Position numbers and translations under genes: made by a program. Shown here piece after piece: positions 7,800 through 58,183 of a stretch of DNA of 64,000 nucleotides (the stretch's first letter is position 1; every line of letters starts with the position of its first letter). The stretch comes from Eukaryota sp. TZLM1-RC (lineage: Eukaryota > Protista > Metamonada: BaSk clade), in the NCBI GenBank assembly GCA_040285825.1, contig JAUPSS010000004.1:4059784-4123783 (forward strand), in the 5' to 3' direction. A model generated the notes under the pieces. That model saw nothing but the letters and a program-made list of their open reading frames with translations, made no database searches and had not been told where the DNA came from.

Positions 7800-8400
7800 A
7801 TTCCTAGAAATCACATGACTTTTGATTAAGCAATGCATTATGTTTATATTTGCTTATATGATTATTCTTATGTCCAACCTAAACCGTGCTAGTGTGGACT
7901 CTGATAAGCATAATCAGGAATTTGGGACATTTAACATCCCAGTAATTGTGATCAAAGTTTTCAGTGAACTTCTGGGCCAAAGGCCTAGAGATGAGAAGAT
8001 TTGTAGATCCAAATAAATGATTAAAAATGGAATTAAAACAAAGTCTTAAAGTGGAAAGTTTGATATGTTTTTGTATATCCAATTTCATCATTTGGTCAAT
8101 ATTTTCGGAAATTAAGTTCAACTTATCAAACAATTCTTTGGTGACTTCATCATTATTTCCTAAAAACGAACCCAAATGAACGAATAGCATCAGTTGAATA
8201 TAACTATAAAAATAGTAAGAGTTGTTTGTTTAAAATGAATAAACAAGGACATTTGCACAGATTCATTGGTGCACTCAATGTCAAGGTGAGTTTGAATGTA
8301 CGTCCAAAATGTAGGGTGCACTGCTAAAATACTGATGGATTAGGCATCATAATTAGCATAAAGTCTTTAACAACAACTAAAGGTCAAAACCTTTATTGAT
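7800..8400 (-). pseudogene. Degraded CRE-like LINE fragment (RT C-terminal region)
   Basis: HLGSFLGNNDEVT...KHIKL..LRLCFNS..NHL is homologous to 42030-42200 and to the 43011-45002 RT tail. Confidence 0.7.
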
Positions 8401-8438: not shown

Positions 8439-9137
8439 TCAACGTTTTTTTAATATTATAATAAAACAATCTTCTGGAAAACTCAATAAGGAAAAATGAA
8501 GCAAACACCTATCTAAAGCTTCAAAAAGTAATTCATGAGCAACGTTACTTCTTTTCTTGTAGGCAATGACGGCCTCTCCATCATCAGTTATGAGCTCTTC
8601 AACAGTTTCAAAGAGCGGGGTAAAGCATGTTGGATCATACAAAACATCTGCGCCATAAACTAAGTCGAATTTACCATATTCAAGGGAAAACCTATTGGCA
8701 TTGTCCCTCTCCCATTCAAGGATATGAGACTCAATGCTAAGACAGTTGACATTGGCATTTTTTGAGATAAGATCAACGATTTCTCTCTCTCCATCTGTGG
8801 CAAAAACATGGTCAACACTACAATACTTTTTAACAAAAAGACTGGGAAGTGCAATTCCTGCACCAAGTTCTAAAGCCTATGATTAGCAAATCATTTGGTA
8901 GGTAAAAACTTTTGAACAAGAAGAAAATACAGTTGTAATATTGAGAAGAAGATACTCTAAGAGTACATGTGTAGCCGGCCACAAAACTGTTCCTGTCCGA
9001 TCACAATCTGTACTTGCTGCCTTCGAACAGTAAGCATTGACAGTGAAGTCCTTATGATGATAAAGGTTGAGAATGTAATCAGTGGTTGTGAAGAGATTTA
9101 GAAAGGCATCTTCATAATCATCTTCTGTAGCAATCAT
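8439..9137 (-). CDS. METTL21/METTL23-family (Methyltransf_16) lysine methyltransferase, one intron 8877-8909
   Basis: ATG at 9137. TGTVLWPA, then after a 33-nt GT..CTAAT..AG intron ALELGAG, FATDG, LEW, FDLVYGADVLYD. Spliced frame intact to TGA. Confidence 0.9.
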
Positions 9138-9142
9138 TGAAA

Positions 9143-9300
9143 CAGATATTGTGTATAACAATGAATTGAAATAAGTGTCCTTTTTACACCAATGTAGAGG
9201 GACTGAGTTTTTGAGAAGTAGAAGATTTTCTCCTTGACACCATTTCCTTTGAACCTTCATCAACCTTGGCTCTCTGTCGGTATACCGGGCTATCTCCACC
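9143..9300 (-). ncRNA. Predicted Fanzor omegaRNA scaffold, copy A; guide would continue into TTTCA-ATG-ATT-GCT...
   Basis: Conserved, hairpin-rich ~150 nt between the RuvC-III coding region and the element end. This is where TnpB/Fanzor omegaRNAs are encoded. Confidence 0.65.
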
Positions 9301-11431
9301 TTTTACATGTGCTTTTATCACAGCCAACATATTCAGCGAAGCATTTCGATCTGTATTCCACAAACTTTCACATGATTTACACATGGTAAGCCCATGACGA
9401 ATAGACATCTCATGTCTCTTCCATAGCCTAGGATTTTGTGCGCTTTCTTACAGTTGAAACAACAGCAACTGGTTCAAAACTCATCAATTAATAAGACCTT
9501 ATAACCAGCCTTTTTAAATAGAATTCTCAAACCTTTTTCTTTGGTAGGTCCTTTGAATTTCATGTGTTTTCGTTGTTCCCAGTCTCCAATTCCAATAGCT
9601 ACTTGGCCTGGATCAGCAATTACTGATTTGAATCTCTGTATCATCTTTGCTTCAGCTCTTGTGCGATTAATCTCAGCCGACCATCTTAGTTTCCTAAATT
9701 ATTTTTGATGATAGACTTCACCAACAATACTGTTCACAAAATTCTTTTGTTTAATATAGGCCATAAATCTATCAAACCTGCAGCGTTTGAAATTGAATTG
9801 GGATAAAGTTGCTTCCCGTTCTACTGCAGGTTTAGTTTTTTGTTCATTATTTCTCAAATTCAATGAGTAATCAATTTCGTGGGGAATATTGCTTTCTTGA
9901 GGTACTTCATCTCTTAATAAACTAATTGTTCTTTCAGTCATTTGATTAATTATACTGCTGTATAAATCCATCCTTTGTTCTTGCTCTTCAGATGGTTCAT
10001 AATTGGATAGATCAATCACTCTATTAGTAGAGTTACTTATTGTGATAAGAGTGTCATTCCGTATGCTGTCTCTTATTCTTTTGAATTTGGAACTTTTTGA
10101 CTCAAATCTTCGTTGATTTTGAGTGTACCTGAAATGAACATATTTATCTCTCTGTGGTTTTTTGAATGAGTCATTCCAGTAGCTAAATTGGCAGAGAAAT
10201 AGAGTAGATCAGATTTCCCTGGATCAGTAGCTGCAAGGGTCCTATCTTGGAATTCAGAAGGATTGATGCTGGGGTCATCAATATACTTTTCTTTATCTTT
10301 TTATTCTTTTGCAGTTATTTTGTACTTTTTCAAGTCCATTCTAGATTGAATGAAACTTACTGCTGTTCCATCAGTCTCGATACTAGACATCCTGTACTTT
10401 GAATTTTCTGAATAAAGATTAGTGTTTTGAATCTTATCCATTTTCAAAAAGGTATTCCATAAAAACAAATCAGCAGCTTGATTATTGCATTGGTAAAAAA
10501 ACCTTGGACCGGGAATGTCCTTGAATTGGGCAAAGAACAAGTCCAACAAACTTGTCTTGTCAATTCTGATATACGAGGGAATACAAGAATTCGTCAAAGG
10601 CAGAGCATGAAAGAATTTGCTCTCCTCATATTCTAGATAATTATTTATATACAACAATGCCCCCAAATACAAATTTGATTTCGATGAAAAATCAAATTTT
10701 GAATACTTTTCCCTTTTAGTAGTGGGAAGTAAGAGAGGGATCCGGTCATTAATGAAAAGCAAAGTAATTGATGAGACTTTATTTCTCATTGCAGAAGTTT
10801 CACCGTCAATATCTCTACATCCCTCTAGATGAAGAGGTTCAACTTTGCTGATGAATGATGAGAAGTTTTTCTTATCTTGCTTTTTCAGAACATTGTTGTT
10901 TCTCTTAACATCATAGAGAACATCAACAAACCGATTCAAGTAATCAAAGTAGTGCCCTGGGATGTTATTTGTGAAATTCACAATCAGTTTGTCAATTGTG
11001 TAATACAAAATATAACTTATTCTCTTTTTTGATAAAACTTTACAACCAAGTTTTTTTCTAAAGTGTTGGTGATAAAATTCCTACAACGAAGCACAACGAA
11101 GATTTTGCAAAGCTGTTTTTGTCTTTGGGCTGAGGGAACTTTCCTCCTCACTTTGGGACGTGACTATAAGAAAAGCGTCACGAAATTCCTGGGTTTCAAT
11201 TTTTGGTAAAATAGCATTTGGGTTTAAGTCAAAAATATGCAAATAGTAACCACAAATGAATTCTAAACCAACAATAGAAATTTTTTGACACCTAATTACT
11301 GCCTCATCGATCACGTCAAGCATTTTCGGATCTCTGATGACACTTTTTAGACTGTCTTCATAACCATCATAAGGTTTATGTTTAACAGTTTCCATGAATT
11401 GGTCATTGTTAAAGAAATTAAATAATTTCAT
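9184..11431 (-). pseudogene. Fanzor1-like RNA-guided endonuclease, disrupted
   Basis: N-terminal SLKSVIRD...I.EAV.R. Then IETDGTAVS, RuvC-I TDPGK, RYTQNQRRFE, FRKLRW, IGDWEQRKHMKFKGPTK, a RuvC-II region (LLIDE, frameshifted), Zn ribbon, WNTDRNASLNM. Stops at 11081, 10301 and 9699 plus indels. Confidence 0.88.
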
Positions 11432-12200
11432 GGTTAATTCGGGTATCCCTCAAACAGTAAACTGCAACTGCAGTTCTTCTTTGGGATAAGGAAAAATCTG
11501 AGAAGGATTATCTTCTTGAACCATCCAATATTTTGCAATATACTGAGGATCAAGGTCAATTCTACTATCCCCTAATAGAATTTTAGAAACTGTGTTTAGT
11601 TTGCGTGTTTGATAATAATTTGTGTAAATACTACAAGTATCTACAACAAATCGACCAGCAATTAAGGGGTTCAAGTGTTTGTGATTCAATTCTATTAAAT
11701 TTGAGTTATAGTATTGAACCTATTCACTAGCACCGATTTCATATTTTGAAAAGTCCTCATTTTGAGAACGTTTCATAATATGTGGGATGTCAAATGTGAG
11801 AATATTAAAACCACAAATTATTATATTATTATAGGATTAAAAAGATTCTAATAATTTTTTGAATGAACTTTGCAATTCTTTTTAAGAGGAATGATGATAT
11901 AAAGTGATATTTTTATCATCAACTTTGCAAAAATGTATATTTCTGCTTGTTGGCTTTTCTACAAGATCACAAAAACAAAGATTTAATTCAATCTGTTCTC
12001 GAGTAAAAATATGAGAAACAGAATTTGCAACAATTTTTCTTGTAGATTGACAGTAAGAGATGGAATGTTCTCATGCAGAAATGACAATTATTTCATCCTC
12101 ATCACTGAGCTTTTTACCCAACACCAAAGTTTCAATATCAAAATGTAATATTTTGAGAGTAAATTGTGTTTTGACATTTGATGGTGTCACTAAAGGGTAT
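11432..12200 (-). pseudogene. Family-B DNA polymerase-type 3'-5' exonuclease domain (DEDDy), no polymerase domain
   Basis: ExoI LKILHFDIET (~12128-12155) and ExoII IICGFNILTFDIPHI (~11780-11825) plus IAGRFVVD and KLNTVSKILLG are all in one frame with stops. ExoIII AVYCLRDT-ELTMKLF (~11420-11470) is reached through single-base shifts. Confidence 0.85.
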
Positions 12201-12439
12201 TTGTGTCGAGTCAGTGGATTCTCGTTGAACAGTGTTTTTACACGTTTCCAAGGTCTGCTCAATACAATCGCTCGCCTTTTTCTGACGGTTTTATGTACAG
12301 ACGAGCATTTCTTTGTCTCAAATGATTTGTGTTCTTTGTCAACACAGCTATAAAAACAACTTTTGTCTTGGTTCACAAAATGTTTAACATGAGCTGGATC
12401 AATTGAATTGTGCTGATTTGACAAAAACAAATTGATCTT

Positions 12440-13040
12440 TTTTTGAAAACAATATGGTGAATATTCCACAATCATACAAATTAGATTGAAAAAAATTCAG
12501 ATATATTCTGACTAATATTGATTCCAAGTTTTTCCAAAAATTATTGAATTACTTTTTTGATGTTGTTCTTCATTATGACGAAGACTATCAAAAAGAAATG
12601 CTTTTACTGTTCTGGATTTGATCCAGAATGCAACAAGTACCCAATGTTGTCCATTAGTAAATTGTTCGTCAACAGATGTAATCAAATTTGATTGATGAAA
12701 TGCATCATTATTTTTTTTAACTGGAATATTTATTGAGAAAAAAAACTATCTAGACTTCAATATCCTCCAAACAAGCGTCACTATTACTAAACATCATTAT
12801 AGGGTAGAAGAATCAATGTGTTTTCGTGGTCGCCAGAATTGATCAATTGTGAGCAAAAATCCTCTTGAACAAATTCCCTAAAAACAATAGGGCTGATGCG
12901 ATGGGGCAAACAAGTATTTTGTGATGTGACAGTGGAGTTGATGACTGATTGATAAAGTTGTTGATCGAATCAGTGATTTGTTCATCATCTAATCACCTGT
13001 CTTCAACATCATCACTTTGTTGCCCTCCACCTGATAAATT
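12440..13040 (-). pseudogene. Ulp1/SENP8(NEDP1)-like C48 cysteine protease domain, disrupted
   Basis: Ordered motifs (W>stop)LDDEQI, ISPIVF, LILLPYND, GQHWVLVAF (His 12644-12646), FLFDSL, QSNLYDCGIF (Cys 12468-12470). Not in the ORF track because of frameshifts. Confidence 0.82.
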
Positions 13041-14279
13041 TATTTTTTAAAAAGTTATATTGTTATTATAAAATGGAATTAATTTTATATAATTTTTAAT
13101 AAAAAATTATAAAATATTTTATCAGATAGGTCATCAATCTTTCCAAAATAAACACAAAATGAATTGCTTCCTTCTATAAAGAGGCTGTGGGTGAAAACAC
13201 TGATGTGTGAAACTCATACAGCTTCCAGGTTCGTGCCCCAGACACGACCAGCAAATTCATACATAATGTGTTGTTTTGAAATATTTATAAAATGTTTATT
13301 AATCAATAATGTTGAACAATTAATTAAAAAACAGTTTTTAAAAACTTCATGATGGACTACTTGGACACATTGACCCTTCTCAACCAAAAAAAATGGAATA
13401 ATCAATTTGACCAAGTAGATTATTTTCAACCAAATGGTAGAAAGGGTCTTCATGAGAAAAAGTTCCCTTGTTACAATTGGTTGAACAAGAACTCACCTGT
13501 GAAGGAGGAATATCAAATAGAAACTTTGAATTAAATGATTGTTTTCTCTGTAAAATATATTTAGATGGTCAGTCAAAAATTATCAATCAATTGGCTGATT
13601 GCTTATATTCTAGAATTAGAATTACCTTGGGGGTTATAATCGATTTGATTGATGATGTCAGCAGTCAGATAAAGTCAAGTGTCAATACGTGTCGGTCAGT
13701 TTTCTTTTTTGAACCTTTTGTTTATAATTCAAGTTATAAAATCCAACAAATTATTGCTCAAGTTTGTATTTAACTCAATCCAATCTATTGTTGATCTTTT
13801 TCAGAATTATTTTAAAGAACTCTGATCTTATCTGGATAGCAATCAATCAATATCAATCATATCTGAACTGATTGGTCTATCAAATTTGATTAGTTAATAG
13901 GGTTTTGATTTTAATCATTTGTTTGCTCCAATTTTGAGGGATATTGTATGCCAAAAGTCCAAAGAACATGTCAATATTTCGTTGACTTCATTAGAAAAGG
14001 GTCAAAATTCACAGGATTTTGAACTAGATACTCCACCTGAAGAATTTAATTCAGCTTCACATTTATTGGTAGTAAAGGAATTAAATATTTTGATCAATAT
14101 TCTTAAACCTTTTTCAATTATTATGTGCTTGATGTGTTGCAAATCAACGTTGAGAATTTGAGGGCTGGAAATGATCTCCAAGTAGGGCTCAGTGCAAGCT
14201 TGCTCCTGGATGGTTTTACTCAGCAGCGAATCCATATAATTCTGAATCCTCTTTGGACCAGGGGGTGCGTCCGGCATGT

Positions 14280-14390
14280 AGTGAAAATAATGAGCTTATT
14301 TATCAAATTTTGCACTCATTCTCGACTTATGGTTGCCTATTCTATCACGTTTTTAACCTTCAACTTGGTTCTGGGAGGTTTTCACTTTTG
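14280..14390. repeat. Dispersed repeat, homologous to 56550-56670
   Basis: Shared TATCAAATTTT..CAC...CGACTT..GTTGCCT...TTAACC(T/C)TCAACTTGGTT(C/T)TGGGAGGTTTTCACT. Both lie in decayed minus-strand ORFs of unknown family. Confidence 0.7.
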
Positions 14391-15224
14391 ATTCACCAAC
14401 ATTCATTAGCAATCTCAATGACTATCTGACATTTTTGTGCTATTAGACGATGTCTTCAGGTTCTAGTCATCCAGAAGCCTTCGCAACTCTGCCAAGACTG
14501 CCACCAGTTCTTTGGCTCTACTGAAACTGCCTGAAGTGTGTGTTACAAAAACTACCACTCTGTTTACTCCCTCTTCCAAATGCCTGGTCTAGTTTTCAGT
14601 GAAGTGTCCAGACATAACCCGTTTCTAGCTGATTTCATAAAGCGGAGGTGTCTCTAGACATGCTTTCATCTCTAGGTTATTTAAAGTAAGACTTTTTCAT
14701 TTTTCGAGTCCCTTCATGATACGCCTTCCATTGTACACCTTTGTTGGTTTCCATGTTGATATTTTCTTCCAATTTCACGTCATGGTATTGTAGTAATTTT
14801 ACGCAAAGATGTTTATCTCACTACTTGGTTTCTTGAAACTAAACTCGTTTAAACAGCTTATTAAAGCAATCATTGAAATATGGTTAGCATGAAAAATTAT
14901 TTGGGATGTGGGTGCAAACTTGTTTTCACATTGTTTCACCAGTTATACATAGCCTTTATTGACAAAGGAGCAGGACTCAACCCGTCTATAATTAAATGTC
15001 AGTTCATCTTGTATACAATAAAAATCTATCTTCCTTCTTTTTTGACAGAAATGATGTGATATCATCACAACAGCTTCATAAACATATACTTTTTACATCT
15101 GACATCAACTTATCTTTATTGGGAGAGAATGCCTATATAAATATTTTTTTGTAGTAGTGTTCCTATTTTTTGCCATGAACAAATTCCATTCACTATCTCA
15201 TCGTTAGAACTATTTGACTGTGCG

Positions 15225-15412
15225 AATTCCAATTCTAAATCCAAGACTAGTTGCCCTGCAGTTGATTCTTATAGCTCTCGTACGAGATCCAAGAGAGGGA
15301 AAAGGTAGTGTTGTATTCTGGACAATTAGTCTAGTACATACAGCACTAGTGATGGCCTTTATAAGGGCCAGTGAATTTTAATAAACACCTAATTATTCTT
15401 TATTGTTACACA
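15225..15412 (+). mobile_element. Gypsy family 3 remnant: integrase tail, PPT and 3' LTR (15309-15412)
   Basis: Encodes NSKSKTSCPAVDSYSSRTRSKRGKR-TAG directly followed by TGTTG. Homologous to 59975-60170 (-). Confidence 0.85.
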
Positions 15413-15640
15413 TGGTTGTTCGCCGCTTAAATGGTAGTTTTACTATTTTGGATGCCATGTCCATTGACCCTTGCAATTCTTCTAACGAACATTTTATTAA
15501 TTCTGATGTCAATAATCCTCTTTTTGCTGACAAAAATTCCAAAATTGCTAAATACGTGAAACATATTTCTTCTGTCAAGAAAAATCCTAATGCCCAATGA
15601 AATTTAGGTAAGGCTGCTTTGGCTGTCCTTGATGATTTCA
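15413..15640 (+). pseudogene. CRE-like LINE endonuclease-domain fragment
   Basis: LNGSFTILDAMSIDPCNSSNEHFINSDVNNPL nearly identical to 45858-46110. Confidence 0.85.
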
Positions 15641-15670
15641 ATGGAAAAAATTTCTTAGGTTCTTGCATTC

Positions 15671-18600
15671 TGATGATCTGTGGGGGTTAGACATTGAGTA
15701 TACCTTAAATGTAATTTATTACAGGGAAATAAGGATTTCCCTAAACTTAAGCGCATAGGCGCAATAAATACAAATACTATTAGTAAACTATAAATAAACT
15801 ATTATAAATATTATCCAAGGCTAACACTGCCCTTTCTTCTTTTCGAGCGTCGAGGCCTGATAGGAGTTGGATTAACATTATTGTTAATATTAACAGAACG
15901 ACGTTTACGGCGTGAAGGACGAGAGCGAGTATTAGAAACAGACTTGGAGAATTCTTTATAGGCAGAGGTGTTTTGAACAGTCGAAACCAGCTCAGTGGTA
16001 ATATGATTGCCAGGCCATTGGACTTGACAGTAATCACCATCCTGACTGAGGACTTTCTGGATCACGTGCTCTTCTGCATCGCCAGCAGCAACCCAGGAGT
16101 GAAATTCATCATCTACTGGTAAACTGGAATGCCAAGGTTGGAGGTGCTTCACACTGGCTTTAACAACCATACCAGTACACAGGTTCTTGATGTCAGCTGT
16201 GGAGGTAGAGGGTGTGTCGATAACTAAGAATGGTCCTTTGTAGTTACCATGTAACTTAGCAGTGGAAGACGAAGCTCGTTTTACCAATTGGCCAGGAGAG
16301 AAAGGGTTGGCTTCGATTTGGGAATCACGAGGAGGAGCCTTGGAAGCTTGACGGAGCTCTGCTTCCTCCTGTTTCTTCTTCAATCTGGCAAATTTGGATT
16401 GAATGTTGTTGATGTAGGTTGATTCAGACGTTGAGCTTTCGAGGGTCTCTATGATTTTGCCGGGGTCAGCTCTTGGGCTAAAATCTGAACCAAACATGAG
16501 CTCGTATGGTGAGTAACCTGTAATCGAACTCTTGGATGAGTTGATTAACAATTGTACATAGGGTATGTACTCTGACCATGCGTCGTAGGCGTTAAAATCT
16601 ACGAGCAGCTTCCTCAAATTCTGCAAAATGTCACGGTGACGGCGTTCGACTAAACCGTTGGACTGAGAGAAGTGAGGGACGGACTTTGAGACCTCTATGC
16701 CCAAAAACTCACATAGAGCGTCGAAGACAGCTTTAGAGAACTCAGGACCGTTGTCACTATGAACTATGAACGGGATCCCGAATATCGCGCATACCTTCCA
16801 TATGAGAGCGTCAGCGGTAAGGTTGGCGTTGAGTTCTTTGAGGGGGACTATGATAGTGAACCTCGTGAAGCTATCCACAAATACAAGAATGTATCTGTGG
16901 CCGTCTTGATCTTCAGGAAGAGGACCAATGACGTCGACGTTAACTCTTGCGAATGGTCTGTCAGCCCACAAGGAACCAGTTGTAGGGACATGCAGTTTGG
17001 GGACTGCTGCTGTCTTCTGACAGGAGGGGCATTCTTGGACGTGCTTGGTCATGTCTGAAAGCATGTTAGGCCACCAGTAGTCGCTGTTCTTGAGTCTGAG
17101 GAGACTTTCTGCCTTACTGGGGTGGCCACCTTGCGGGAGTCCATGTAGAAGGTTAAGCGTATCCTTAACCAGTGATTGAGGAATCACGATCTTGTGCTCT
17201 GGAGTCAGATAAAGATCTAGACGACTATCCAAAGTACAGTTGTTAAATGAGGTGTCCTGGTTAGCGAGGGCTCGCTTTTTGTTCGGACCTGATCTTGCAG
17301 AGCCATGGCTCGAAGAGTGGAAGGTCATTGGAGCATCTGTCTTGAAGGATGAGCACCTTCTCAAATGTATGGAGATCTTCAACGAAGCATCTCTCTGACT
17401 CAGTTTCGTCAATCCTATTTGTGTAGTAGATAGGGTGAAACTCTTGGTCATTAGAATGTACCAGATGGTTGATGGTATGATTGTCTTGGGGCGGTACTAT
17501 CCTAGATAGCATGTCTGCCCAATGGTTCTCTTCCCCTTTTGTATGAACTATGTCGAATAGGAACTCAGAAAAGATGGGAAGCCACCTTCTGACTATTCTG
17601 TTTTTGTTCGGAGCGGTGAGCATGTAAGTAAGGTTTTGGTGATCTGTGAAAATGATCAGGCGCCTTCCTTTGAGGTAGTTCTCGAAGCCACTTTCGGTAA
17701 GCATGAGAAGGATAGCGTAAAGCTCTTTCTGTACCGTGGGCCAGTTCTGCTGGGAGTTAGTCAACAATCTGCTGAAGAAGCTGATTGGTCTACATTTCCT
17801 ATTGAGTAAGGAAGTACCAGGGTCCTTAGTGGGTTCTAATTGTTCCCAAATCACGCCGCCAACTGCTATATCAGAGGCATCGCAACTAATTAGTACTTGG
17901 TTATCCACCGGAGGTAAGTTTAGAGGCATATGCTCCGCGATCAGGCGTTTGATTTCGGCTAAATGGTGGTCGTGAGTGTCTTTCCACTGCAGGCGACGTG
18001 GTTTGCCGTGTGTTAGTTTGATGATCGGGGCAACATGCTTGGTTACCTGGGGAAGCCATTCCCTAATGAAGTTGACTGAGCCGATAAGGCTACGGGCGTC
18101 TTTCACAGTCTTAGGTCTGGGAAGATTCAGTAAAGACTCTGTGCGTGTAGGATCAATGGTCCTGGTTTTGTGTTGGAATCTGCTACCAAGGATCTTTATT
18201 GGGTGTCTAGAGGACACAAAATGGCACTTGGGCAGTCCAAGGCTAACTCTACGGGTTCGAGCCTTCTCGAGGACACGTCTTAGACGTCCGAGGAACTCGT
18301 TGAAAGTTCTACCTACTATAATGATGTCATCTATATAGATGAATACACCGTCTCCGGAGAAGATGTCTGCCATAACGTTCTGGAAAACTGCAGGAACGTT
18401 CTTGAGGCCGAAAGCAGCACGTTTAAACATGATGCTTTTGCCAGGGATGCTTAAGGCAGTCTTCTCCCAGTCCTTTTCTGCAATTTTTAGTTGCCAAAAG
18501 GCTTTGGGGAGGTCAAGGGTACCGATGAAATTGGCTTCTGAAAGGAAGACTAGCACATCGGATATTCTGGGGAGATTAGGTTCAACGGGAATAGTGTTGG

Positions 18601-30129: not shown

Positions 30130-30951
30130 CTAAAACTTTTTCAACCCCTGCCTTGATTGGATAGTCTGTAATCTGGATATACTACCACTGGCTCTGCCAC
30201 TGCCAAAATTTGTCTTACTTTTTGATGAAGACCCTGAAAATTTCAACCATGAGCTCTTTTTTGATTGTGTAACCTTATCAAGCTCTTCTTCTTGCTTCTT
30301 CCGCTTCAAATCTCTCTCTTCAAAGGCTTTTTGTCTCTTTTCACCAGCACTGAGAGTTAGCCTATGAACTGCTTCTTTTTTTGATTCTGGAACCGGTTGG
30401 ATAAATTCAGCCTTGACCTGCTCAAAATTGTTATAAGAAAGAAACTCAACCAAATAGGAAGATTCCTTACTGCTAAAGCTCCGTTGAATTCTTGCTGGAT
30501 AAAACTTCTTATCTTGCGAATAACGTGCTAATACAAGATCTCCGGGTGAGAAGAAGCGACCTTCTGGGTGTGGTTCAACTTCCTGAGCTTCCTTACTCAA
30601 CTTGATAAGAGGGCCAAGCTCAACAAGCCTAAGAGTTAAGGATTCATCATCAGAATCAACAACAACAGCTTCGGCATTTTGTCCTTTGTAGCGAGCCATA
30701 CAGCGACTTCCTACAGTAAAAACGGACTCGTCCAGTGGTTCATCGGGTGGAGGTGACTTTGGCTTTTCCTGAACTGGTGTAGAACTACTTTCAGATGATG
30801 AGGTTGATAGCGTACCTTTAAGTAAAGAAAGCTTCTCGTCAATCTTTGCAAGTAGATTCAGAAGCTTTTGGTCTGAAGGTGATGTATCTAAAAGCTTGAG
30901 CAGAGACTCTCGCTTTGAAGTGAGTTGTTGTATTATTGCCCCTGCATCCAT
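30130..30951 (-). CDS. SPF30/SMNDC1-like Tudor-domain splicing factor
   Basis: N-terminal helical hairpin (L...PSDQKLLNL), Tudor folds (VGSRCMARY; GDLVLARYSQDKKFYPARI..YLVEF..YNN.E.V), Lys-rich tail with KSSWLKF. Confidence 0.8.
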   Translation of the reverse strand: MDAGAIIQQLTSKRESLLKLLDTSPSDQKLLNLLAKIDEKLSLLKGTLSTSSSESSSTPVQEKPKSPPPDEPLDESVFTVGSRCMARYKGQNAEAVVVDSDDESLTLRLVELGPLIKLSKEAQEVEPHPEGRFFSPGDLVLARYSQDKKFYPARIQRSFSSKESSYLVEFLSYNNFEQVKAEFIQPVPESKKEAVHRLTLSAGEKRQKAFEERDLKRKKQEEELDKVTQSKKSSWLKFSGSSSKSKTNFGSGRASGSISRLQTIQSRQGLKKF

Positions 30952-30957
30952 TTGCTA

Positions 30958-31110
30958 CAGATATTGTCTATAACAATGAAACAAGTGTCCTTTTTACACC
31001 AATGAAGAGACCAAGTTTTTGGGAAGTGGAGGAATATTTTCTCCTTGACACCTTTTCCTCTGAACCTTCATCAACCTTGGCTCTCTGTCAGTATACCGGG
31101 TCTATTTCCA
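30958..31110 (-). ncRNA. Predicted omegaRNA scaffold, copy B; guide would be TAGCAA-ATG-GAT-GCA...
   Basis: Same conserved hairpin-rich end as copies A and C. Confidence 0.65.
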
Positions 31111-32878
31111 CCTTTTACATGTGCTTTTATCACAGCCAACATATTCAGCGAAGCATTTCGATCTCTATTTCACAAACTTTCGCATGATTTACACATGGTA
31201 AGCCCGTAACGAATAGACATCTCATGTCTCTTCCATGGCCTAGGATTTTTGCATTATCGGAATCTTTCAACTTTTTTCTCCGCTTTCTTACAGTTGAAAC
31301 AACAGCAACTGGTTCGAAGCTCATCAATTAAAAAGACCTTAAAACCAGCCTTTTTAAATAGAATTCTGAACCCTTTTCCTTTGGTAGGTTCTTTGATTTT
31401 CATGTGTTTTCGTTGTTCCTCGTCTCCGACTCCAATAACTACTTGACCTGGATCACCAATTACTGATTTGAATCTCTGAATCATCTTCGCCTCAGATCTT
31501 GTGCGATTAATCTCAGCCCACCATCTTAGTTTCCTAAGTTATTTTTGATGATAGACTTCACCAACAATACTATTCACAAAATTCTTTTGTTTAATATAGG
31601 CCATAAATCTATCAAACCTGCAGCGTTTGGAATTGAATTGGGATAATGTTGTTTCCCATTCTGCTACAGATTTAGTTTTTTGTTCATTATTTCTCAAATT
31701 GAATGAGTAATCAATTTCGTGGGGAATATTGCTTTCTTGAGGTACTTTTCCTCTTAATAAACTAATTGTTCTTTCAGTCATTTGATTAATTATACTGCTG
31801 TTTAAATCCATCCTTTGTTGTTTCTCTTCAGATGGTTCATATTTGGATAGATCAATCACTCTATCAGTAGAGTTACTTAATGTGATCAGAGTGTCATTCC
31901 GTATGATGTCTCTTATTTTTTTGGATTTGGAACTTTTCGACTCAAATCTTCGTTGATTTTGAGTGTACCTAAAATGAACATATTGATCTCTCTCAGGTTT
32001 TTTTGAATGAGTCATTCCAGTAGCTAAATTGGCAGAAATACAGAGTAGATCAGATTTCCCTGGATCAGTAGCTGCAAGGGTCCTATCTTGGAATTCAGAA
32101 GGATTGATGTTGGGGTCATCAATATACTTTTCTTTATCTTTTAATTCTTTTGCAGTTACTTTGTACTTTTTCAAGTCCATTCTAGATTGAATGAAACTTA
32201 CTGCTATTCCATCAGTCTCGATACTAGACATCCTGTACTTTGAATTTTCTGAATAAAGTTTAGTGTTTTGAATCTTATCCATTTTTAAAGAGGTATTCCA
32301 TAAAAACAAATCAGCAGCTTGATTATTGCATTGGTAAAAAAACCTTGGACCAAGAATGTCCTTGAATTGGGCAAAGAACAAGTCCAACAAACTTGTCTTG
32401 TCAATTCTGATATACGAGGGAATACAAGAATTCGTCAAAGGCAGAGCATGAAAGAATTTGCTCTCCTCATATTCTAGATAATTATTGATATAAAACATTG
32501 CCCCCAAATACAAATTTGATTTTGATGAAAAATCAAATTTTGAATACTTTTCCCTTTTAGTAGTGGGAAGTAAGAGAGGGATCCGGTCATTAATGAAAAG
32601 CGAAGTAATTGATGAGACTTTGTTTCTCATTGCAGAAGTTTCACCATCAATATCTCTACATCCCTCTAGATGGAGAGGTTCAACTTTACTGATGAATGAT
32701 GAGAAGTTTTTCTTATCTTGCTTTTTCAGAACATTGTTGTTTCTCTTAACATCATAGAGAACATCAACAAACCGATTCAAGTAATCAAAGTAGTGCCCTG
32801 GGATGTTATTTGTGAAATTCACAATCAGTTTGTCAATTGTGTAATACAAAATATAACTGATTCCCTTTTTTGATAAAA
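30958..32878 (-). mobile_element. Fanzor element copy B, 5'-truncated
   Basis: 436-codon open frame 31539-32849 with IETDG and TDPGK. After the TAA: LRKLRW, GD.EQRKH, LIDELRTSCCCFNC, C..C, NRDRNASLN. Ends CAATATCTGT. Confidence 0.92.
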
Positions 32879-39123: not shown

Positions 39124-40466
39124 TTTTTTTTAGTAACAACAATTTTATTCTAAATTTATAAATCAACATCTAAAAAATCCATCTCTCCTAAAACAAAAAC
39201 ACTAGATGCAACTCTCTCATAGTGAGATCCAAGAGAAAGCAAAGCATCAGAAACCATCTTCAACATCCCCTTAAAAATAGAAAACACAATTCTATTTTGC
39301 CAAAACAATCTGTTGAAATTTCTGCCAGTTCTTTTCTTTACAATCATTTCAAAATCATCCAAAAAACGTAAAGCAGTTGGTGCAAGTGAACCAAAAAGGG
39401 AAAGTACAAATGGATACAAATTGTATTTTGCATGCTGTAGACTGGCCAATTTGGACAAAGGTTCATTGTATTTTTTGAATTTAAAATTTTCAGCATTTGA
39501 AAGGGGATTATGAATTTCAGAATTAACAAGCCTTTCATTTGAGGCATTACAAGGATCAACAGACATTACATCCAATAAAATGAAGCTTCCATCTAATCCA
39601 GGTAATATGACATCACCTCTATTATTCTTATGAAAATCATTTTCAGCATCAAACAGATTTGACAACAAAGGTTCCAAGAAGGATTCAATTCTATGAGATT
39701 TACACATACAATATAACTGGTCTCTTACAGCATCATGAACCTTGCTTCTAAAAAGTAATAAAATGTTTACAATTTAACAAATGAGTAGTTGTAATTTCTC
39801 GAGAACATTTACAAATTAAATTATGAGGTAAATTATCAGGCCAGATAAAGGAACGAAATCTCATATTCAGAGTCCAAGCAGAATCGGATAAGAGAGTACC
39901 ATAAACTTGTGGAATTGTTGTTACTAAGGCAGAAGAAGTACTGTCACACATATCTTGTAAAAGATTTGCAAAAGCGGGATTCTTTTTCTTGGCCAAGCCA
40001 AGTCTAACATCAAAATCCAAGCTTTCAAAAATCTTTGACAATTTTTGTTGAAGTTTTTACAGCAAAACTGTAAATTAAATAGAGATCGGTTTGGAATTTC
40101 TTGAATTGATTGAGGAAAACATTTGGTCCAAATTTGTGGCGGTAATTTTTCAAGTTCACAAGATAACTCATACAAATAGGGACTACAATTGGGGACTAAC
40201 AGATGAGAATTATCAGGAAATCTACGAGAAAATTCATAAATAAAATTTTTGCCACCACCCAAGAATGCTGATTGACACAAAATTGAAGATTTAGTAAAAC
40301 CAATACCACCCAAATTTGCTGAAGAAAATAAATGGCTTTTCAACATTCCTGGTTCTACATCCAATAAATCAGCAAAAAATTCTGTTCTCAATAAATTAAA
40401 AGAACGACAAAAATCTAATGCTATGGAAGGAGCACAAGATCTCAAAATGTGGGTTATTCTCCCACA
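39124..40466 (-). mobile_element. 5'-truncated CRE-like LINE (family 1) with poly(A) and TSD
   Basis: TSD TTGCGTTGTCAC(T) at 39112-39123 and 40467-40478. T8 at 39124-39131. Empty site visible near 52060-52075. Confidence 0.93.
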
Positions 40467-52549: not shown

Positions 52550-54024
52550 TTCGAAGATGACAAAAGTAAGCTCTTTCGTCGCTCTGCATTTGTACCAATC
52601 GTGTATACCATTCTATATCAGAAGTGACAAGACAAGTTTATTTAACCTGTTCTTTGCCGAATATAGGCACAGCTGATTTGTTCTTATGGAACACCATTTT
52701 GAAAATGGATAAGACTAAAATCACCAAATTTTATTCAGAAAATTCCAAGTACATCATGTCTAGCATCGAGAGTGATGGAGCAGCAGTTTGGTTCACTCAA
52801 TCTAGAATAAACTTGAAAAAATACAAAGTAACTGCAGAAGAATTGAAAGATGAAGAAAAATATATTGATGATACCAGTATTAATCCAATCCAATTTCAAG
52901 ATATGACCGTTTCTGCTTCTGATCCAAATAAATTTGATCTACTCTATTTTTCTGCCAATTTAGCTACTGGAATGACTCATTCAAAAAAACCTGAGAGAGA
53001 TCAATATGTTCATTTCAGGTACACTCAAAATCAACGAAGATTTGAGTCAAAAAGTTCCAAATTCAAAAGAATAAGAGACATCATACGGAATGACACTCTT
53101 ATCACAATAAGTAAGTCTACTGGTAGAGTGATTGATCTATCCAATTATGAACCATCTGAAGAGCAACAACAAAGGATGGATTTAAGCAGAAGTATAATTA
53201 ATCAAATGACTGAAAGAACAATTAGTTTATTAAGAGGAAAAGTGCCTCAAGAAATCAATATTCCCCACGAAATTGATTACTCATTGAATTTGAGAAATAA
53301 TGAACAAAAAACTAAACCTGTAGCAGAATGGGAAGCAACATTATCCCAATTCAATTCCAAACGCTGCAGGTTTGATAGATTTATGAAGTATATTAAACAA
53401 AAGAATTATGTGAATAGTATTGTTGGTGAAGTCTATCATCAAAAATAATTTAGGAAACTAAGATGGTGGGCTGAGATTAATCGCACAACATCTGAAGCAA
53501 AGATGATACAGAGATTCAAATCAGTAATTGGTGATCCAGGCCAAGTAGCTATTGGAATTGGAGACTGGGAACAACGAAAACACATGAAATTCAAAGGACC
53601 TACCAAAGAAAAAGGTTTGAGAATTCGATTTAAAAAGGCTGGTTATAAGGTCTTTTTGATTGATGAGTTTCGAACCAGTTGCTGTTGTTTCAACTGTACG
53701 AAAGCGGAGAAAACAGTTGAAAGATTCCGATAATGCAAAAATCCTAGACCATGGAAGAGACATGAGATGTCTATTCGTTACGGGCTTACCATGTGTAAAT
53801 CATGCGAAAGTTTGTGAAATAGAGATCGAAATGCTTCGCTGAATATGTTGGCAGTGATAAAAGCACATGTAAAGGTGGAGATAGACCGGTACACCGTCAG
53901 AGAGCCATGGTTGATGAAGGTTCAAAAGATGATATCAAGAAGAAAATCTTTCACTTCTCAAAAACTCAGTCCCTCTACATTGGTGTAAAGAGGACACTTA
54001 TTTCATTGTTATAGGCAATATCTG
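52550..54024 (+). mobile_element. Fanzor element copy C, 5'-truncated
   Basis: IESDG, SDPNK (RuvC-I), RYTQNQRRFE, TAA, FRKLRW, IGDWEQRKH, LIDEFRTSCCCFNC, NRDRNASLN. Ends CAATATCTGT. Confidence 0.92.
53870..54024 (+). ncRNA. Predicted omegaRNA scaffold, copy C; guide would be TAACA-ATG-ATC-ACT...
   Basis: Hairpins GTCCCTCTACATTGGTGTAAAGAGGAC and ATTGT-TATAG-GCAAT lie just before the end. Confidence 0.65.
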
Positions 54025-54029
54025 TAACA

Positions 54030-54650
54030 ATGATCACTCTTTCCTTGACGTGCATTCTTATATCTATTTCTCTAGTGTTTGCACATTATGGCCAGTTTGC
54101 ATGTGATGCACATCCACCGTTTGAAATAGGACAGCAAGCTTTGCTGTCAGTAGACATATTGGGCCATGAGGGCACATTCCCCTTTTACCCCAAAGTAGAT
54201 GACTTTTCCCTGCTTCATCTCTATGGTGCTGGAGAGCCGAGCTCTACTCTTTACAAAAGCATTGATGCAAAGCTTGTTGTACAACTACACAATTCTGGTG
54301 AAAATGGCTCCATTGAGTCCCAAGAATTGACCTTCAGTAATGATGAAGGGTTTGTCCCCTACTTCACAATTGTAATTAACCTTGTAAATGGACGACCCTC
54401 TTCCTTGGTTTTAGATACTCCAATCCCTGACAGGGTGTCATATAGTGATGCTGATTGTAGTGACCATGAATGTGACCCTCGTATTTACCTTGCTTGGGCG
54501 GGAACAGATGAAAAGGGTTTGAGGTGTCACTCAGTGGATTCTATCTTTTCCCGACTGCGCTCACACTCGCTTAGGTCAATGGTGGATACTGGGTTTGGGT
54601 TTATTGATGATATTAAGGATCATATTGATGATTTGATTGGTGATTTGTAA
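54030..54650 (+). CDS. Hypothetical secreted protein
   Basis: Intact 206 aa with an N-terminal signal-peptide-like segment, C..C..DPRIYLAWAGTD..G motif, TAA stop. Confidence 0.8.
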   Translation: MITLSLTCILISISLVFAHYGQFACDAHPPFEIGQQALLSVDILGHEGTFPFYPKVDDFSLLHLYGAGEPSSTLYKSIDAKLVVQLHNSGENGSIESQELTFSNDEGFVPYFTIVINLVNGRPSSLVLDTPIPDRVSYSDADCSDHECDPRIYLAWAGTDEKGLRCHSVDSIFSRLRSHSLRSMVDTGFGFIDDIKDHIDDLIGDL

Positions 54651-57275: not shown

Positions 57276-58183
57276 TTTTTATATTTATTGAATTTGCACA
57301 TTTGATTAAATTAAATCATAACTAATGGGACGACTATCATTAAACCAAGATTTCCTCTACAAAATCTTGATTTGCTTGCTGTCTAGCTAAAGCTTCTCTA
57401 ATTCGATTGAAAAACCGCGGTAATCTATTAATAATGGCAAATTGAATCCGTGAACGCCATAAAAAAATATCAAATCTTTTCATTGTTTTTTCTTTCACCA
57501 TTTTTTGGAAGTCATCCAAAAAAGTTTCTGCTTCAACTGATAATCTTCCATTTATCGAAAATGGGAAAGCAATAAAAACCAGCTGTGTAATTCTATCGAC
57601 ATTTGCATCTTCAATTTCTTTATCATATTTTCTATGTTTTTCTTTTGCTTTAAAATCCAGAGCAGCCACAGGATTAAGTTTTCTTCTGTGAACCAAAGTA
57701 TCGTTTGCAACATTACATGAGACAAAGTCAACAATAGCTTCAGAATTATCAATCCAATCACAGTATACATCACCTCTATCATCAGAACCAAAATTATTCA
57801 GAGACAGTGTTTCCTTCAGCAGGGGCTCTTTGATACACGATATCCTTGCAGTTTGTGCCATATTGAAAACAGTGTCTCTAACAGCATCATGTAATGAAGA
57901 ACGATAAGTTATCAATTTAGAGCAATTTAGAGCATGGCTCAAAGTGAGTTGAGGTGAATTCGAACAAATACATTTTTCTTTTGATAATAATTGGTTAATG
58001 GGGATGTTCAAATATAATCTCATTTTTGTTACAAATGCTTCATTAGTGGCACACAATCCAAATCTTCGTGGTACAATGGTTACAAAAAGTGAAGAATCTG
58101 ACGCCTTGTTTTCACAAACACCCTTTTCCAATAACAATGAGTGAAGATCTTGATTTAAAACAGCCGAGCTGCAAATATTATTA
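57276..58183 (-). mobile_element. 5'-truncated LINE family 2 with TSD
   Basis: Open 265-aa RLE region (CICS..HALNC..HDAVRD, RGDVYCD). A-tail. 10-bp TSD CCCTACAAAC (57266-57275, 58184-58193). Confidence 0.92.

Follow-up and report, generated by a model that had tools for sequence, protein, structure and literature searches.

Fanzors are eukaryotic cousins of Cas12 that are under development as compact genome editors, and exonucleases have been bolted onto RNA-guided nucleases by engineers to alter repair outcomes. Ulp1-like domains are carried by plant MULE elements. The known Fanzor1 proteins are stand-alone, with only a nuclear localisation signal (NLS) region at the N-terminus, whereas the protein deduced here has approximately 714 extra codons before the Fanzor start methionine. 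It belongs to a repeat family of Skoliomonas litria TZLM1-RC, the type strain of the species (PMC11603281), and was deduced from a 64,000-nucleotide stretch of assembly GCA_040285825.1 (contig JAUPSS010000004.1, positions 4,059,784 to 4,123,783 of the forward strand; hereafter the window) together with related loci. A decayed, near-full-length copy of the repeat lies on the minus strand of the window at 14418-9142. The fusion of leader, protease, linker, exonuclease and Fanzor1 characterises the repeat family as a whole and is not an accident of the window locus.

The fused reading frame and its copies

An earlier note on this stretch had read a protease, a PolB-type exonuclease and a Fanzor as parts of one protein, and related copies in the same assembly place all three in one ancestral frame. 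A phmmer search of the whole library with the piece that spans the junction between exonuclease and Fanzor (window 11084-11449) returned two fragments, both from Eukaryota sp. TZLM1-RC, GCA_040285825.1, and word-indexed protein searches returned three more, all from this assembly. Five other loci on four of its contigs (L001-L005) align collinearly with the window through position 11431, with identities of 86-93 %. They cover the window from 14418 to 9129 (L001, with a LINE-like insertion), 12695 to 9137 (L002, with a reverse transcriptase (RT) insertion), approximately 12362 to 9144 (L003, with a Gypsy insertion), 11904 to 9133 (L004) and 14301 to 9132 (L005, with an open reading frame (ORF) free of large insertions). 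The junction is also bridged by short contigs from three separate runs of one sample (10972-11506 and 11151-11506).

Overlapping stop-free ORFs of the sister loci yield one frame of approximately 1,456 codons within an ancestral unit of approximately 4.7 kb. The frame starts at an ATG (14277-14275), ends at a TAA (9186-9184) and encodes, in order, a leader of approximately 200 amino acids, a C48-like protease, a basic linker, a Pol-delta-like DEDDy exonuclease and a complete Fanzor1. The intact 491-amino-acid ORF P0006 of L005 runs from the ATG through leader, protease and linker to ExoI, and stop-free ORFs extend from the protease to ExoI (L001:8699-9664, 322 amino acids), from the exonuclease into the Fanzor (L001:9668-10513, 282 amino acids; L005:11708-12547, 280 amino acids), across the junction (P0005, 288 amino acids; P0002, 171 amino acids) and through the RuvC half to the stop codon (L005:13367-14380, 338 amino acids). 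Across the 1,456 codons, L005 is broken by three stops and two frameshifts only. The size of approximately 1250 amino acids first proposed was too small, the upstream leader having been left out.

When the minus strand of 8800-13300 is translated in three frames, the C48 triad, the three exonuclease motifs and the Fanzor motifs of the window copy appear on one strand and in the order first described, scattered over changing frames with all three stop codons between them. Between 11449 and 11084 (ELTMKLFNFF...SLKSVIRD) the frame is open through the junction, and the ExoIII helix does run into the Fanzor N-terminus without a stop. Projection onto the near-intact copy L005, from which the window-copy coordinates given here were derived, reveals 10 in-frame stops, approximately 13 frameshifting indels, a 28-bp deletion at approximately 9436 and two insertions. 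An alternative genetic code is ruled out because each of the three stop codons is represented among the breaks, along with many frameshifts; the breaks are therefore real, and the window copy is a pseudogene, unable to make any of the proposed protein. Its own stop-free pieces give weak matches to Peptidase_C48 (E=0.04), DNA_pol_B_exo1 (E=0.0025, 17.7 bits) and Cas12f1-like TNB (E=0.04, 14.5 bits), and the piece at 10304-11080 matches the Fanzor1 structure 9cer with E=7.3e-5. The copy had been called decayed and the only one long enough to show the architecture; it is decayed and is the longest in the window, but L001 and L005 are comparable or better.

The two further Fanzor copies in the window (B, 30957-32878; C, 52553-54034) are both 5'-truncated and end short of the exonuclease/Fanzor junction, so the window alone cannot separate a fusion from a chance in-frame insertion, in which the locus held an unrelated protease/PolB pseudogene that a Fanzor element entered on one occasion. 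An element boundary at 11400-11430 had been named as the sign of such an event, and no copy has one: six copies are nearly identical across this interval, and the junction peptide (LTMKLFNFFNNDQFMETVKHKPYDGYKDSLKNVIR) is nearly invariant among them. Given the same junction at five other loci on four contigs and in the short contigs, with stop-free ORFs crossing it, a chance insertion is extremely improbable.

Domains of the predicted protein

The complete Fanzor1 moiety (codons 715-1456, 742 codons; minus strand, 9187..11395) is identified by matches to structures in the PDB and to Pfam TNB and by selection. The window copy retains RuvC-I TDPG at 10225, IGIGDWE, LIDEF, a CCCFNC...CKSC zinc ribbon and WNTDRNA, and the RuvC motifs (xDPG, LIDEF, NRDxNA) and CxxC...CxxC zinc ribbon are found in it and in every copy covering them. 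ORF L005:13367-14380 matches the Fanzor1 structures 9cf0 (PpFz1, E=6.8e-22) and 8gkh (SpuFz1, E=3.6e-19), and Pfam TNB (PF07282) scores 30.2 bits on the L005 ORF against a cut-off of 26.3.

Relatives found by scanning metagenomes with the RuvC half include intact Fanzor1 ORFs, L007 2186-4168 (660 amino acids) and L008 7701-9671 (656 amino acids). These free-standing proteins are the closest intact relatives fetched, with 46 % identity in the RuvC half and 26-28 % in the N-terminal half. By BLASTP, residues 148-277 of the L005 ORF align with residues 2-130 of the L008 protein (E=1e-9), and residue 2 of the latter pairs with the fusion residue two positions after Met715 (11393..11395, minus strand), the fusion point, which aligns at the start methionine of the free-standing relatives. 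No exonuclease homology was found by tblastn upstream of those relatives. Because their start is aligned to Met715, the exonuclease was added at the old start codon and not by chance insertion. As judged from these alignments, the Skoliomonas protein is a whole Fanzor1 lengthened from its original start codon, with the exonuclease as an N-terminal add-on.

The neighbours of the L008 gene are giant-virus-like (a minor capsid P2 homologue and an Eco57I-type methylase), and a neighbour of the L007 gene has weak matches to IBR zinc-finger domains. Another relative, L006 2110-2934, comprises the RuvC half only (274 amino acids, 53 % identical to the Skoliomonas protein) and has a dUTPase gene approximately 1.5 kb away on the same contig.

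The exonuclease (codons 459-714; minus strand, 11396..12172) is of the B-family polymerase type, Pol-delta-like and DEDDy, with predicted 3'-5' polarity. In the window copy, ExoI reads FDIET at approximately 12145-12131 (D/E at 12142 and 12136), ExoII reads GFNILTFD at approximately 11806-11792 (N/D at 11806 and 11794) and ExoIII reads YCLRD at 11456-11442 (Y/D at 11456 and 11444); the motifs are retained in 5-6 copies. Pfam PF03104 (DNA_pol_B_exo1) scores 36.8 bits on L001:9668-10513 against a cut-off of 23, and yeast Pol delta (3iay) matches with E=1.5e-7 over Pol3 residues 307-463, with ExoII and ExoIII aligned (YCLKDA against YCLRDA). No match to a polymerase palm, fingers or thumb domain was obtained with any piece searched, and the Fanzor begins at Met715, approximately 15 residues past the ExoIII helix. 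As no polymerase domain follows ExoIII, this is an isolated exonuclease domain and not part of a polymerase.

A clan-CE protease and a PolB exonuclease on the same strand, together with nearest free-standing Fanzor1 relatives in giant-virus-like contigs, would also be expected of the remnant of a Polinton/Maverick-like virus into which a Fanzor had been inserted. Neither within the unit nor next to it, however, is there a polymerase domain, an integrase, an ATPase or a capsid gene, and the unit, approximately 4.7 kb long, is directly flanked by host genes; the best match of the exonuclease is to replicative Pol delta and not to a protein-primed PolB, and protease and exonuclease lie in the single ORF P0006. 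A viral remnant of this kind is accordingly given almost no weight.

The protease (codons 217-385; minus strand, 12392..12986) is assigned to clan CE, family C48 (Ulp1/SENP8-like), from its catalytic motifs and from ESM Atlas. The catalytic His (GQHW, 12646-12644), Asp (FDSL, 12589-12587), oxyanion Gln (12488-12486) and Cys (12470-12468) occur in order, the last two within QSNLYDCG at 12488-12468, and they are kept in all four copies that reach the region (GQHW, FDS/NL, QSNLYDCG). Language-model features in ESM Atlas gave a score of 0.95, and C48 clusters made up 28 of the 30 matches. No PF02902 match was found for P0006 in Pfam, and no PDB sequence match for the protease domain. The identity of the protease is considered probable, not proven. 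The fold comparison with a SENP8-like cluster gave a TM-score of 0.65 (on a scale of fold similarity from 0 to 1), computed from ESM Atlas's own low-confidence model, and a SENP8-type specificity, drawn from this predicted-structure match, is tentative.

Upstream of the protease, the leader (codons 1-199; minus strand, 13038..14277), defined by the P0006 ORF and by projection, is broken in the window copy by a 644-bp insertion; it has no Pfam match and no meaningful ESM Atlas match. Between leader and protease sits LSGGG (codons 200-204; minus strand, 13023..13037), a candidate cleavage site of the ubiquitin-like type. The LSGG reported to precede the protease is thus present at 13037-13023, but it is internal, the leader lying upstream, and it is not uniform among copies, since one of three copies reads SGEG (LSGEG in L001). 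The basic linker that follows the protease (codons 386-458; minus strand, 12173..12391) contains an NLS-like RKRR...KRVK and the sequence LFNENPLT.

The di-glycine motif upstream of the protease and the persistence of the original Fanzor methionine at the junction are the features to be expected of a polyprotein, in which translation of the long ORF gives separate products, whether through the C48 protease, ribosome skipping or internal initiation at Met715, so that the Fanzor acts alone and the exonuclease and protease are accessory proteins in their own right. The canonical 2A motif NPGP is nevertheless absent from every frame of the window and of L001-L005, the candidate positions reading DVKDRWLD and LFNENPLT in all copies, so that this is a subfamily without a canonical 2A site. 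Neither a di-glycine nor any other recognisable site lies between exonuclease and Fanzor, and the approximately 15 residues from the ExoIII helix to Met715 are typical of a tight domain fusion. Separation into independent proteins is considered unlikely, though it is the most probable of the alternatives weighed here.

Selection, termini and proposed function

For the analysis of selection, eight copies were projected on the L005 frame and substitutions were classed against the majority codon. Substitutions shared by at least two copies gave an omega of 0.39 overall (p=1.5e-10), 0.34 in the Fanzor (p=1e-10) and 0.37 in the exonuclease (p=0.03; 8 synonymous and 12 non-synonymous), and singletons gave 0.60 overall. 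In the two wrong frames, which served as controls, the shared substitutions gave 0.95-1.14, and pairwise Nei-Gojobori values were in agreement with the shared-substitution estimates. These substitution patterns show purifying selection in the fusion frame, on the Fanzor and, more weakly, on the exonuclease. The catalytic motifs of all three enzymes are retained in every copy covering them.

At its 3' end the unit comprises the stop codon and a 42-nt tail (minus strand, 9142..9186), delimited by an alignment of eight copies. The last approximately 60 nt are conserved in all eight, each ending ...ATATCTGT, at position 9142 in the window copy. The ATG of a host ORF stands at 9137, just past the element end, and in each of the three window copies a spacer of 4-5 nt separates the terminus from the ATG of a same-strand host ORF (9137-9142, 30951-30957 and 54025-54030). 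At L001 (approximately 15978-15986), L002 (14290-14291), L003 (19675-19682), L004 (14084-14095) and L005 (14424-14429), called host genes on the same strand (Elongin A, HSP70-like, ARS2-like and others) start where the homology ends or within approximately 10 nt of that point. The alignments suggest a spacer between terminus and ATG of 4-6 nt across the eight copies. An abundant LINE-like retroelement was considered as the cause of the exact 3' and ragged 5' ends and was rejected, its own 3' ends (...CAAATTCAATAAATA) not lying at host start codons.

In the mechanism proposed, the Fanzor would cut DNA under the guidance of an RNA made from the element's conserved 3' end, and the tethered proofreading-type exonuclease would chew back the 3' ends at the cut. 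Resection of this kind would prevent the ends from simply being rejoined and would favour repair in which the element is copied; alternatively, the exonuclease might trim the guide RNA. The protease could cleave off the leader, for example after LSGG, or strip ubiquitin-like modifiers from chromatin or repair factors. Fanzors typically bear an NLS at the N-terminus (PMC10530073), and the NLS-like RKRR...KRVK of the basic linker may bring the protein into the nucleus.

Several observations weigh against this account of the family. No intact copy is among those retrieved, as every one has stops or frameshifts. No fused relative outside GCA_040285825.1 was found in protein searches, in the library-wide phmmer search with the junction piece or in scans of metagenomes and viral contigs, and no run on record as RNA was found to contain the stretch. 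All three window copies have in common a derived TAA at codon 1276 (9701-9699), which is ATA, two base changes away, in the five other loci, and each of the three precedes a different host gene. Spread thus continued from a copy that was already dead, so the protein is not needed in cis, and that copy seems to have been mobilised in trans. As to the protease, Pfam PF02902 scored 17.9 bits on the L001 ORF, under its gathering cut-off of 20.7, an AlphaFold2 model of P0006 made without an alignment had a pLDDT (per-residue confidence) of 29, and selection was not significant on protease or leader, for which 3-4 copies each were available. Fusion of TREX1, TREX2 or T5 exonuclease to MmeFz2 lowered the activity of the Fanzor2 editor in every case (PMC12923547), and since engineered exonuclease fusions impair that editor, a benefit of the tethered exonuclease is not a given.

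The broken state of every copy seen, the stop codon that spread with three of them, the lack of a transposase in the unit and the confinement of the fused relatives found to one assembly could be accounted for by a passive composite, that is, a single accidental fusion (for example, through entry of a Fanzor into a gene fragment with a protease and a PolB exonuclease) that never gave a functional protein and was amplified as a dead block by other machinery. This is improbable in view of the purifying selection in the fusion frame, which includes the exonuclease and is set against off-frame controls of approximately 1, the retention of all catalytic motifs, the join precisely at the Fanzor start methionine with the frame uninterrupted, and the unit's own ATG and 5' leader sequence, common to three copies.

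The best explanation overall, rated as likely, is that the window holds a dead copy of a family that encodes one fused ORF, for whose product cutting and trimming would be the function. That S. litria has, or recently had, an active RNA-guided cut-and-trim enzyme is put forward more tentatively. This enzyme would consist of Fanzor1 with an N-terminal exonuclease and an upstream protease, its element would dock with single-nucleotide precision 4-6 nt before host start codons, and the exonuclease would be part of copying or site choice; the chances of this fuller proposal are judged to be somewhat below even.

The 5' untranslated region of the window copy survives as a remnant at 14278..14418 (minus strand), recognised by the copy alignment and by blastn collinearity with L001 8093-8356 and L005 7307-7449. 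The common 5' sequence of L001 and L005 reaches approximately 160 bp farther than the upstream end of the window copy (L001 7933 = L005 7143), so the latter is slightly 5'-truncated. Two insertions are private to this copy, as contig joints from separate sequencing runs confirm. The 644-bp insertion in the leader coding region (13516..14159) is not in L001 or L005, is skipped by the contig joint 13515>14159 and has no second copy in the window or in L001-L005. The 80-bp short-repeat insertion in the protease region (12712..12791) is likewise missing from L001 and L005 and from contigs joined at 12702>12792. Its repeat recurs in either orientation at L003 9272-9346 and at L004 8219-8304 and 12549-12617, beside truncated 5' ends of other family copies or within them, and may represent one end of a further small mobile element.

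Other contig joints from the same sample (12061>14265 and 12711>14285) connect the first codons (MSDAP...) straight to internal points of the ORF. The contigs are internal-deletion derivatives in which the 5' end is kept and either the leader and protease or everything from leader through ExoI is gone. The RT-bearing LINE-like retroelement occurs at L001 10780-14128, L002 10233-12352 and L005 7450-9976 and at window 7879-8203, 57282-58047, 39148-40464 and elsewhere; it sits within two Fanzor copies, at points within approximately 90 bp of each other on the element, and also interrupts the 5' leader sequence in another copy. The Fanzor part of L003 carries a Gypsy-type long terminal repeat retrotransposon with protease, RT, RNase H and integrase (11652-18525).

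Comparison with known systems

Fusion of an exonuclease or a protease to a Fanzor is not mentioned in Bao and Jurka 2013, Saito 2023, Jiang 2023 or Yoon 2023, the genome paper of S. litria does not mention Fanzor, TnpB or transposable elements, and full-text literature searches for such fusions returned engineered ones only. The natural combination of protease, exonuclease and Fanzor is not found described in the Fanzor literature searched. If kept under selection, a natural exonuclease-Fanzor1 fusion would reveal a geometry that is workable in evolution. It would also offer a direct handle on how Fanzors serve their elements in the chromatin of eukaryotes, a setting in which ubiquitin-like modifiers and the choice of repair count, and a cut-and-trim enzyme, if true, would represent a functional class new among OMEGA/Fanzor systems. 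How the fusion came about can be read clearly from its join at the former start codon, taken with the viral relatives that are free-standing.

The Fanzor moiety resembles the Fanzor1 proteins of known structure (SpuFz1, 8gkh; PpFz1, 9cf0; GtFz1, 9cer) in its RuvC and zinc-ribbon matches and in identical LIDEFRTS and WNRD motifs, and its REC region is like that of GtFz1. The free-standing L007 and L008 proteins, unlike the Skoliomonas fusion, are without exonuclease, protease and leader. With the exonuclease of replicative Pol delta the fusion shares ExoI DIE, ExoII NxxxFD and ExoIII YCLxD in that order, whereas the N-terminal domain, palm, fingers and thumb of Pol delta are missing and the Fanzor stands in the place of the polymerase.

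The presence of a clan-CE protease in a mobile element recalls the transposon-borne Ulp1/C48 proteases, and one structural neighbour of the protease in ESM Atlas is a cluster that joins an Ulp-like protease with hAT transposase domains. In contrast to those transposon proteases, that of Skoliomonas is in frame with a pair of nucleases and not with a transposase, and it scores under the Pfam family cut-off.

The idea of tethering an end-processing exonuclease to an RNA-guided nuclease is shared with the engineered TREX2-SpCas9, to go by the title of its report (PMC13370227), and with the MmeFz2 fusions (PMC12923547). These fusions are man-made and draw on other exonuclease families, whereas the exonuclease of the Skoliomonas fusion is natural, N-terminal and of the PolB type.

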